Positions 1 through 21,662 of a stretch of 64,000 nucleotides of DNA are shown piece by piece. The notes under the pieces are model-generated. The model was not told the DNA's origin. It did not search any database and saw only the letters and a program-made list of their open reading frames with translations. The DNA lies in contig NC_087439.1 in the NCBI RefSeq assembly GCF_036321535.1, positions 67,890,001 through 67,954,000 of the forward strand, in the 5' to 3' direction. Made by a program: the position numbers and the translations under genes. The stretch is from Camelus dromedarius (taxonomy: Eukaryota). Positions within the stretch are counted from its first letter, which is position 1; the number at the start of each line of letters is the position of its first letter.

Positions 1-269
1 TTGAGAGACTCGGGTTGGAGGACTGAAATGGGCCTTTAAAAAAGACAAAGCACATCCCTTGAGAAACTGTCCTGAGTCCAGAGTACCTGTGGTCTGAGGT
101 ACCCATGGTCTGAGGCAGAGCTTGGCAGGATCCAGGGCGGGTTGGGGGGTCTGCCGGGTTTTGAGCTGATGGGATGTCACCAGCGACGGCTGCCCCTCCG
201 CCCTGTCCCCGTGGAGGTCTGACCTCCTCCCGGGGCATCCCAGGAAGCCGAGGTCACAAGACCCTGTGA

Positions 270-311
270 GTGAGACCGCAGTGGGAGGAGGTGAGACTGC
301 AGTGGGAAGAG
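270..311 (+). repeat. 21-bp tandem duplication (2 copies, 2 mismatches)
   Basis: gtgagaccgcagtgggaggag / gtgagactgcagtgggaagag. Confidence 0.85.
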
Positions 312-319
312 GACCTTAC

Positions 320-464
320 CTGTCCAGCCACAGCCCAGCACCTCCAGCCGCATCCCGATCCCCGCTGGCGACCACCGCTCAGGGTAGACCCGCACGTACT
401 GCGCCGGAACTGGGTCGAACCTCCGGATGTCGGGGGTGTCGTAGTGCATGTTCCCTTCAAACAG
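320..464 (-). CDS. NRP2: NRP2 exon 10 (b2 end, LFEGNMHYDTPDIRRF...LEVLGCGWT), 145 nt
   Basis: Acceptor cccctgcag|CTG, donor CAG|GTAAGG. Confidence 0.97.
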
Positions 465-2002
465 CTGCAGGGGAGACAGGCCACCCAGCCCTTCTCAGCA
501 GGACCCCTCCTCCCCCCTCACTGCTGCCCCTCCTCCCCATGCCCCTCCCCACCCCTCACACCAACCAGAAGGCAGCAGCAGAGCTGATGCATGGTCACCA
601 GACATTACAGTCCAGGGGAGCCCCACTCTCAGACCAAGGCTTTTACTCATTTAGGAGGTAGTTAGGGTCCCAGAAACATGGAAAACAGGGCACAGATGAA
701 AGCGGTAATTGCTGGGTTCTATCTTCTATTCTGGGATTGAAACTGTGGATTCAGGAAAGAATTAGGGTCTGAATGAGTCTTAAGCGGGATTTGGCTAGAG
801 AGGAGAGAAGGGGGTTTACACTGTTGTGCTTGTTCTGAAGTTCTCAGTTTATCAGAAAAAGAAGTTCTTTCCCTGATGCTTTAGTCTAGATTTAAAAAGT
901 CCCAGCTTGAAAGCCTAGATTTAGAAAGTCCCAGGTCACTGAGAGGCTGAAGGGAAAGGGACCAACCCTTCTCTAGGCTAGTGACAACTTCCTCTGGTCA
1001 CACATTGATGGTCCAAGACGGTGTTCCCTGATCCCCCAGCCTTCATCTAGTGGAAGAAATTTTGTTAAAAGAAACCTCACCTAGAACTATGCTACATAAA
1101 ACTGATGCCCGTGGGGCTGCCTTGGCTGAAGCCAGGTGGGGGAACCAACCCAGAGCACACCCGAGCATCAGTGATTTCGGGGAATGTTGGTGTGCAGGTG
1201 TGCCAGGGCCTGTGAGTCACCTCGTTTTGCAGGATGCTCACAATTCCAGAAAGGGGGCCACTGTCATGGGGAGGGCAGGCTCTGATCCTAGCTAAGACCA
1301 TCTCCTTTCCCAGGCCCCCAGAATGGTCCGGAAGAGCTAGGGTCAGCTGTCCCTGGGGAAGCCTGTGGTCCAATTTCTGCTCCATCTGCTGAAAGTTCCA
1401 GTTACCAAGCCCTGAGCCTTTCCAAGCCTCTGGAATTATGAGCTGAGAGTTTACATCAGCATTACAAAACCTCCAACCCAGCCCTCACTTCTGCATTAAG
1501 AATGGAAACATTTGCTTAGCAAAGGGGTTAAACAGAGACATGTGATACCCCTTTCTTGTTAGGGGCCCTGCTCTTCTGAGGAAAACCAGGGGTAACTTAG
1601 CAATGAGGATAGGAATGTCTGGCTGACCGGGAGATTAACCTGGATAGGGACAGAGGTGTCATGTCCTCTCCCCTTCCTGGGGCTCCTCCGTGGCCCGTGT
1701 TGAAGGCTGACCTTCATGCCTCTGAAGGCAGGAGAGGGTGCACTGCACTGGCCTGCACTTTGGTCTGAGTAAATTTCCCTAGCCTCTCCCCAGCCTCCAA
1801 GTGACAAGTAGGAAAGATCTAAACAGTCAAGACCAGGAAAATACAAAGGCATGCAGTAACATTCAGAAAAACAGTTGTTTTTGGAAGTAAATTCCCCAGT
1901 TTCTATAGTTGAGCCTCCAAGAAACACATCCCCTTTGGATGTCTGGACATTTCCAGGGAAACTTTATCTAAAAGAGGCTATAGAGGGCCCAAGTTACTAG
2001 AA

Positions 2003-2230
2003 AGGCAGTGTTGAGTAGTGGTTAGGCATTTTGGCTCTGGAGAGAGACTCGTGTCTGAATCATGGCTCTACCACAGGTGCTCTGGGACCTTCAGTGTGAC
2101 ATCAAGCTTGAGTTTTGTCGTCTCTAAAATGGGAGTGACCAAAGGATCGACCTTCTAGAGATGTTGTAAGGGTTAAAATAAGGCATGGAGCAGAGGGCCG
2201 GGCACAAAGTAAGCTCTCAGTTAATATTTG
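2003..2230 (+). mobile_element. MIR SINE, near full length
   Basis: ggcagtg...tagtggttagg...ggctctggag head, core-like tctaaaatggga, and ttgtaagggttaaa...ggcacaaagtaagctctcag tail. Confidence 0.65.
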
Positions 2231-2231
2231 T

Positions 2232-2237
2232 TTTATT
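2232..2237 (-). terminator. Candidate intronic polyadenylation signal AATAAA (intron 9)
   Basis: AATAAA begins 3 nt after the read-through stop, with a U/GU-rich ctttgtg stretch about 20 nt further downstream. Confidence 0.5.
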
Positions 2238-2240
2238 GGC

Positions 2241-2339
2241 TTATAGGGGTTGGTGATGACCGTCAAGACGGGAAAGCAGCACCCCCAAATCAACCTCCCT
2301 GTTTGGGGCAAGGTTAGCGAGTCTCCAGGAACAGCCTAC
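2241..2339 (-). CDS. NRP2: Intron-9 read-through tail of a putative soluble s9NRP2-like isoform (VGCSWRLANLAPNREVDLGVLLSRLDGHHQPL*)
   Basis: The exon 9 frame stays open for 32 codons into intron 9 to TAA at 2243-2241. It starts VGCSWR like the human s9 isoform tail as recalled. Expression is not shown by the sequence. Confidence 0.5.
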   Translation of the reverse strand, partial: VGCSWRLANLAPNREVDLGVLLSRLDGHHQPL

Positions 2340-2689
2340 CTTTGGCTGCTGGGTCCTGGGGTCCTGGATGTGTTCCCAGTCCTTGCCATTTAGGCTGTAG
2401 GAGACTTTGAACTTGCGCACAAACGCCCTGGCTTCCACCGCGGTGATGCTGTCTCCTCCACGGGCCCCCTGGATGATGACACCTTTCACCATCTTGGGCA
2501 CTCCCAGGTCCACCTGAAGCCATTCCTCACCCGGCTGGGCCTGAGGGATCCGGGGGAACCAGCCCGAGCGGCTGCTGACCAGGCGGGCGGCACTGGGGCT
2601 CCAGAGGTACTCGCGGGTGGAGGAGGCAGAGATCTGAGAGTCGGCGATGAGGCCAGAGAGCATCCCCAGCATGTTGGAGCAAGGGGCAT
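2340..2689 (-). CDS. NRP2: NRP2 exon 9 (b2 domain, DAPCSNMLGMLSG...RTQQPK), 350 nt
   Basis: Acceptor ctctccccag|ATGCC, donor AAG|GTAGGC. Confidence 0.97.
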
Positions 2690-2825
2690 CTGGGGAGAGG
2701 GAGGAAGATACAGGAGGTTCTGCTGGTACCCTCCTAACTGGAACCACCCCCATCAGCAGGGAGCTGTCAAAGAACCTGACTATCAAACACATTAAGTCAG
2801 AACTGATTTCTTTACATTTCAAGGT

Positions 2826-3072
2826 AGGATAGCACTGTGGTTAAGAGCCCGGACTGGGTGCCAGACTGCCTGTATTCACGTTTGCTTTGTCACTTACTAG
2901 CTGTGTGACCTTGGGAAAATGATTGAAGTGCTCTGTGCCTCAGCTTCCCTAGATCTAAAGGAAGGCTAATAGCAGTACTTACCTCTTGTTGTGAGGGTTG
3001 TTGTGAGGATTCCGTTAGTCTACAAAACTCGCAGCACAGCACCTGGCATGGCTGAGCATCTCACATGCTTAG
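2826..3072 (+). mobile_element. MIR SINE, near full length
   Basis: gtggttaagagcccggact...cacttactagctgtgtgaccttggg...ctctgtgcctcagcttcc...gttgtgaggatt. Confidence 0.75.
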
Positions 3073-21514: not shown

Positions 21515-21662
21515 NNNNNNNNNNNNNNNNNNNNNNNNNNNNNNNNNNNNNNNNNNNNNNNNNNNNNNNNNNNNNNNNNNNNNNNNNNNNNNNNNNNNNN
21601 NNNNNNNNNNNNNNNNNNNNNNNNNNNNNNNNNNNNNNNNNNNNNNNNNNNNNNNNNNNNNN
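21515..21662. other. Sequence gap (148 N) covering most of exon 4
   Basis: N run. Other gaps: 33024-33259, 37680-37819, 51542-51697, 53596-53754, 54756-55007. Confidence 0.99.

Follow-up and report, generated by a model that had tools for sequence, protein, structure and literature searches.

The window, which is the whole stretch of 64,000 nucleotides of dromedary DNA that was analysed, carries exons 1-10 of NRP2 in order on the minus strand, as obtained by mapping full-length NRP2 onto it. The ten exons are located at about 60309, 46220, 27737, 21763, 20210, 18399, 16378, 3925, 2689, and 464, respectively. Exons 6-8, in which the b1 domain is expected, share 86-98% identity with NRP2 residues 274-430. 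A run of N at 21515-21662 hides part of exon 4, so that the length of the protein is not countable from the window directly. Intron 9 (2339-465, 1875 nt) is contained entirely within the window. The features at and around the exon 9/intron 9 boundary are the following.

2689-2340, minus strand: exon 9 of NRP2, coding for the first 117 residues of the b2 domain (F5/8-type C; 431-547 in homology numbering), with the acceptor AG at 2691-2690
2681-2679, minus strand: TGC (Cys) within DAPCSNML, where b2 begins; the partner of this Cys lies in exon 10 and is absent from the read-through product
2339-2338, minus strand: GT of the exon 9 donor, within AAG/GTAGGC
2339-2244, minus strand: read-through tail of 32 codons, VGCSWRLANLAPNREVDLGVLLSRLDGHHQPL, continuing the exon 9 frame past the donor, beginning with VGCSWRLAN and ending with HHQPL
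2333-2331, minus strand: tail Cys codon TGT, at tail position 3
between 2323 and 2322, minus strand: site of the putative 1-nt deletion (GAG/AC in the window, GAGGAC in outgroups)
2316-2314, minus strand: putative ancestral TAA stop, out of frame in the window, 8 nt after TGG (2327-2325)
2243-2241, minus strand: TAA stop closing the extended tail
2237-2232, minus strand: AATAAA hexamer, 3 nt after the stop; intron 9 has no other AATAAA or ATTAAA in the sense direction
2230-1986, minus strand: ancient repeat-like segment, common to all mammalian orthologues aligned
2212-2203, minus strand: T/GT-rich stretch TTACTTTGTG, 20-29 nt past the hexamer, a possible downstream element judged by its sequence
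about 464-321, minus strand: NRP2 exon 10 (LFEGNMHYD...LEVLGC), encoding the remainder of b2 and the partner Cys, with the acceptor AG at 466-465

The exon 9 peptide runs from DAPCSNMLG to QDPRTQQPK, and its last codon is AAG (Lys), ending at 2340. It is 94-96% identical to mammalian NRP2 and to the NRP2 chains of the PDB, including 94% to bat NRP2 over residues 431-548. The reading frame of exon 9 continues past the donor and meets an early intronic stop after 32 codons, the arrangement of an s9NRP2-type isoform. The frame, the tail of 32 aa, its stop at 2243-2241, and the TAA at 2316-2314 had been given in a preliminary description of this locus, and all of these coordinates were found correct on re-reading the sequence. 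An open frame of this length is by itself unremarkable, with a chance estimate of about 0.2. The predicted product of 579 aa is a length in homology numbering (547 + 32), as the N run hides a portion of exon 4.

Human s9NRP2 is produced by read-through into intron 9 and sequesters VEGF-C (Rossignol et al. 2000; Parker et al. 2015, cited in PMC10934188, PMC5641316, and PMC6540211), and it is without the last 48 residues of b2 (PMC5641316). Its transcripts were reported in 67% of one human tumour cohort (PMC8070368), and soluble Nrp2 was reported in mouse airways (PMC10934188). The camelid locus shares with the human form the gene, the exon 9/intron 9 boundary, the truncation, by which the end of b2 and all that follows it are lost, and an intron-encoded stop; the predicted camelid product would, like the human one, retain b1 and an unpaired b2 Cys. 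The human tail is VGCSWRPL and comprises only 8 residues, whereas 32 residues are predicted in the window by the 1-nt deletion, together with a very short 3' UTR. A paper search with the human tail peptide gave no match. The closest annotated counterpart is the predicted isoform X7 of the Cape golden mole (Chrysochloris asiatica, XP_006862016.1, 555 aa), which is likewise an s9-type protein that ends after ...QPK and an intron-encoded tail. Unlike the window, it has a tail of 8 residues without Cys (VSYSRATP) and the stop at the ancestral position. Among the matches listed, no other annotated s9-type protein was found, and there was no camelid s9-type protein or read-through ORF; the large mammalian protein clusters were read in part only, so that absence there means little. 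The same general mechanism, in different genes and introns, operates in the soluble NRP1 forms s11NRP1 and s12NRP1 and in sFLT1-type decoys, in which intronic polyadenylation and read-through of a donor yield a secreted ligand trap with a short intron-encoded tail; here the likeness to s9-type NRP2 is one of analogy.

As a protein query, the exon-plus-tail ORF retrieved read-through ORFs of many vertebrates; the tail was compared with nine of the genomic or pre-mRNA contigs that carry them and with two metagenome loci. The metagenome scan yielded one ruminant-like and one sauropsid-like locus, and none of camelid type. The sequences closest to the window are L002/L003 and L010, which are ruminant-like in their repeats, L010 being 88% identical. 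Both L002/L003 and L010 read GAGGACTCCCTAACC, and the window aligns at the same place as GAGA-CTCGCTAACC. In addition, L005 carries GGAGGACTCTAACC, so that GGAC is found there, as in L002/L003 and L010, versus GAC in the window. The G is missing from the window at a point 17 nt into intron 9. The homologue of the TAA at 2316-2314 is in frame in L002/L003, where it closes an 8-residue tail (VGYSQRTP), and it also ends the 7-residue tail of L005 (VGVPGGL). In the window this ancestral TAA is out of frame owing to the loss of a single G between 2323 and 2322. A deletion of one nucleotide shifting the stop had been proposed in the preliminary description, and it is borne out by the outgroup contigs L002/L003, L010, and L005, which retain the extra G, and by the 8-aa tail of the golden mole. 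The alignments thus support a 1-nt deletion relative to the probable ancestral arrangement, specific to the lineage of the window. A different change is seen in L010, a metagenome contig (positions 632-660), where the fifth intron codon is TAG versus TGG in the window, leaving a 4-residue tail, VGCS.

The intron-encoded tail is highly variable among mammals. The tails seen are VGYSQRTP, VGCSQKTP, VSYSRATP, VGCS, VGVPGGL, VGRSRWTLP, VGRSWWALP, VGCSQKTLLPF, VGRSQRTLMPF, VGHSQRTLMPF, VSGS, and VSRSQGTLSPSPKRAV. Their length in the other sampled mammals is 1-16 aa, and the 32 aa of the window make up the longest mammalian tail in the sample; the sauropsid tails are longer and unrelated in sequence. 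The last 120 nt of exon 9 align to the window with 87-95% identity and zero gaps, and the tail region aligns with 66-83% identity and 8-30 gap columns. The first 60 nt of intron 9 are dotted with insertions and deletions, some of 1 base, some of 6-8, and some larger. At tail position 3, Cys occurs in a minority of the mammalian sequences seen, and the others have R, Y, H, V, or S. This is the pattern expected of intronic sequence that is probably under little or no coding constraint, and the extension in the window is for that reason most likely due to neutral drift. Separately, the frame used by the window is also open for ~33 codons in L001, L004, and L005, with a similar peptide (...LTLNREVKLGVL.SRLDSHHQ...). 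A conserved coding frame in these three contigs was considered and rejected, since the likeness was judged to reflect chance (about 0.2) together with nucleotide similarity over a stretch too short for dN/dS.

The stop of the extended tail is followed at once by the candidate poly(A) signal. The preliminary description had counted a single sense-strand AATAAA in intron 9, 3 nt past the stop, and a string search agrees: the minus strand of 1-2339 holds no other AATAAA or ATTAAA. The density of AATAAA on the sense strand of the window is 0.82 per kb, which gives an expectation of about 1.5 in intron 9, and the probability of at least one AATAAA within the first 130 nt of the intron is about 0.10. 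The hexamer by itself is not beyond chance. Such weight as it has would come from a position held in common with other mammals. The window, L004, and L008/L009, representing three lineages, carry the motif CCAATAAA(A/G) at the aligned position, and it is decayed in L001 (CATAAA), L002/L010 (AGTCAA), L005, and L006/L007, i.e. in four of seven lineages. By parsimony, the hexamer appears to be ancestral and to have been lost repeatedly. Its loss in four of seven lineages argues against strong selection on a poly(A) site. Together with the T/GT-rich stretch, the hexamer would place cleavage at about 2202-2222, and no TGTA is present upstream of it. On its sequence, the candidate poly(A) site is plausible and does not appear strongly conserved. 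The exon 9 donor, AAG/GTAGGC, is good and close to consensus, and it lies ~100 nt upstream of the hexamer. Strong donors nearby and upstream tend to suppress poly(A) sites.

The predicted read-through product contains the exon 9 Cys but excludes exon 10 and with it the partner region, LEVLGC, which leaves the b2 Cys unpaired on the sequence, dimerisation itself being predicted. PDB chain 4QDS_A consists of b1 and the first 27 residues of exon 9, and it therefore includes the exon 9 Cys and is without the intron tail. We take 4QDS to be the core of the s9 dimer. According to a published account, the early termination within b2 deprives one cysteine of its partner, and this cysteine forms the intermolecular disulfide of s9NRP2 (PMC6540211). 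Dimerisation had initially been assigned to the intron-encoded Cys, but this account names the Cys unpaired by the truncation of b2. Stress had also been laid on the retention of Cys in the camelid tail; this emphasis is weakened, as the tail Cys is missing from most mammalian tails and the intron tail is absent from 4QDS_A.

Taken together, the locus is the s9NRP2 boundary of NRP2, in which the loss of one G led to a predicted 32-codon tail running up to an old AATAAA, most likely through neutral drift; we give this reading a probability of roughly 0.6. According to this reading, splicing at the exon 9 donor, which depends on U1, would fail or be outcompeted, and the transcript would read into intron 9. 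Cleavage at the candidate site would then produce an mRNA with a short 3' UTR, about 20-40 nt long. The protein would consist of a1a2-b1, a truncated b2, and the 32 residues, and would be secreted with a longer, unstructured C-terminus. Both b1, the domain that binds VEGF-C, and the exon 9 Cys left unpaired by the truncation of b2 would be retained; the protein could dimerise through this Cys, and it may trap VEGF-C like the human form. Production of the transcript, its cleavage, and the secretion and decoy activity of the protein are predictions drawn from the sequence and from the human isoform. The preliminary description had also expected the transcript to escape NMD. This part stands if the poly(A) site is used, and it does not hold for plain intron retention, in which exon junctions follow the stop.

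Three other explanations bear on this reading at different steps. The missing G might be an assembly or consensus error, with a true tail of 8 residues, and a difference of a single base within a GG dinucleotide invites that suspicion. However, five runs (X15-X19, from five samples and two studies) contain 100% of the 313 sampled 31-mers of window positions 1-3000. The chance that no sampled 31-mer covers the deletion is about 0.035, so that with a chance of about 96% at least one spans the site; moreover, a run of two bases is not typical for homopolymer error. An assembly error is thus an unlikely source of the deletion, and we regard a true tail of 8 residues as very improbable. A more serious alternative is that the isoform is not made to a meaningful level, in which case intron 9 is spliced, the AATAAA bordering an old repeat is a silent relic, and the extended frame is untranslated. 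The chance-level hexamer count in intron 9, the decay of the hexamer in four of seven mammalian lineages, and the good donor all point in this direction, and a camelid read-through ORF or s9-type protein was not found in the protein collection. That absence weighs little, since camelid contigs seem not to have been gene-called there. The RNA runs contain 31-78% of the 31-mer words of window positions 1-3000, a segment that is 83% intron, and these intronic words reflect pre-mRNA or DNA carry-over and hold nothing specific to the isoform. On the other side stand the documented s9NRP2 transcripts of humans and the soluble protein reported in mouse, and the hexamer with its GT-rich stretch forms a plausible site. 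Because s9NRP2 transcripts in humans and soluble Nrp2 in mouse airways have been reported, production of an s9-type form in the camelid is plausible, at near even odds. The silent-relic explanation is possible, though we hold it to be doubtful.

The third explanation concerns what the longer tail does, and proposes that the 24 extra residues are a functional innovation by which a camelid decoy would differ in how it dimerises, how stable it is, or how it sequesters ligand. It draws on the length of the tail, 32 aa being the longest among the mammals sampled versus 1-16 aa elsewhere, on the Cys kept at tail position 3, and on the stop placed just before the poly(A) signal, which would give a normal stop-terminated mRNA. 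Against it, neither the length nor the frame nor the Cys of the tail appears constrained over mammals; dimerisation has been ascribed to the Cys unpaired by the truncation of b2, and PDB 4QDS is without the intron tail; in addition, the camelid tail contains neither a sequon nor any other motif and averages near zero in hydropathy. We consider such an innovation quite unlikely. The functional weight that the preliminary description had implied for the 24 residues is likewise not sustained by mammalian tails that measure 1-16 aa, are rich in indels, and show intron-like identity. The further proposition, that camelids express a soluble NRP2 decoy whose 32-residue C-terminus alters dimerisation, stability, or the trapping of VEGF-C or semaphorin relative to the 8-residue form, is highly unlikely. 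Returning to the s9NRP2 boundary with a drifted tail, the 32 residues are most likely an ordinary variant, specific to this lineage, of an isoform already known, brought about by neutral drift rather than by a new function. The intron-encoded tail of s9NRP2, Cys included, is not conserved among mammals, which argues that the tail is dispensable and that the conserved function, if any, is the truncation itself. If the isoform is expressed, camelids would have a slightly different natural VEGF-C trap, a point of modest interest to comparative studies of the vascular and lymphatic systems.

The sequence around the boundary also contains repeats of several kinds. The segment at 2230-1986, which begins just past the hexamer, may derive from a MIR element, which it resembles, and a search for further copies of it within the window found one weak match only. 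About 190-400 nt into intron 9, L002 and L010 have an extra repeat (GGCTTCCCTAGTGGCTCAG...) inserted in this old shared segment, and the window and the other mammals are without it; we take the inserted repeat to be akin to a ruminant SINE. Another old repeat-like segment (GGTCACACAGCTAGTAAGTGACAAAGC...) is located in intron 8, just upstream of exon 9, at 2990-2720 on the minus strand, and shares ~88% identity with L010.
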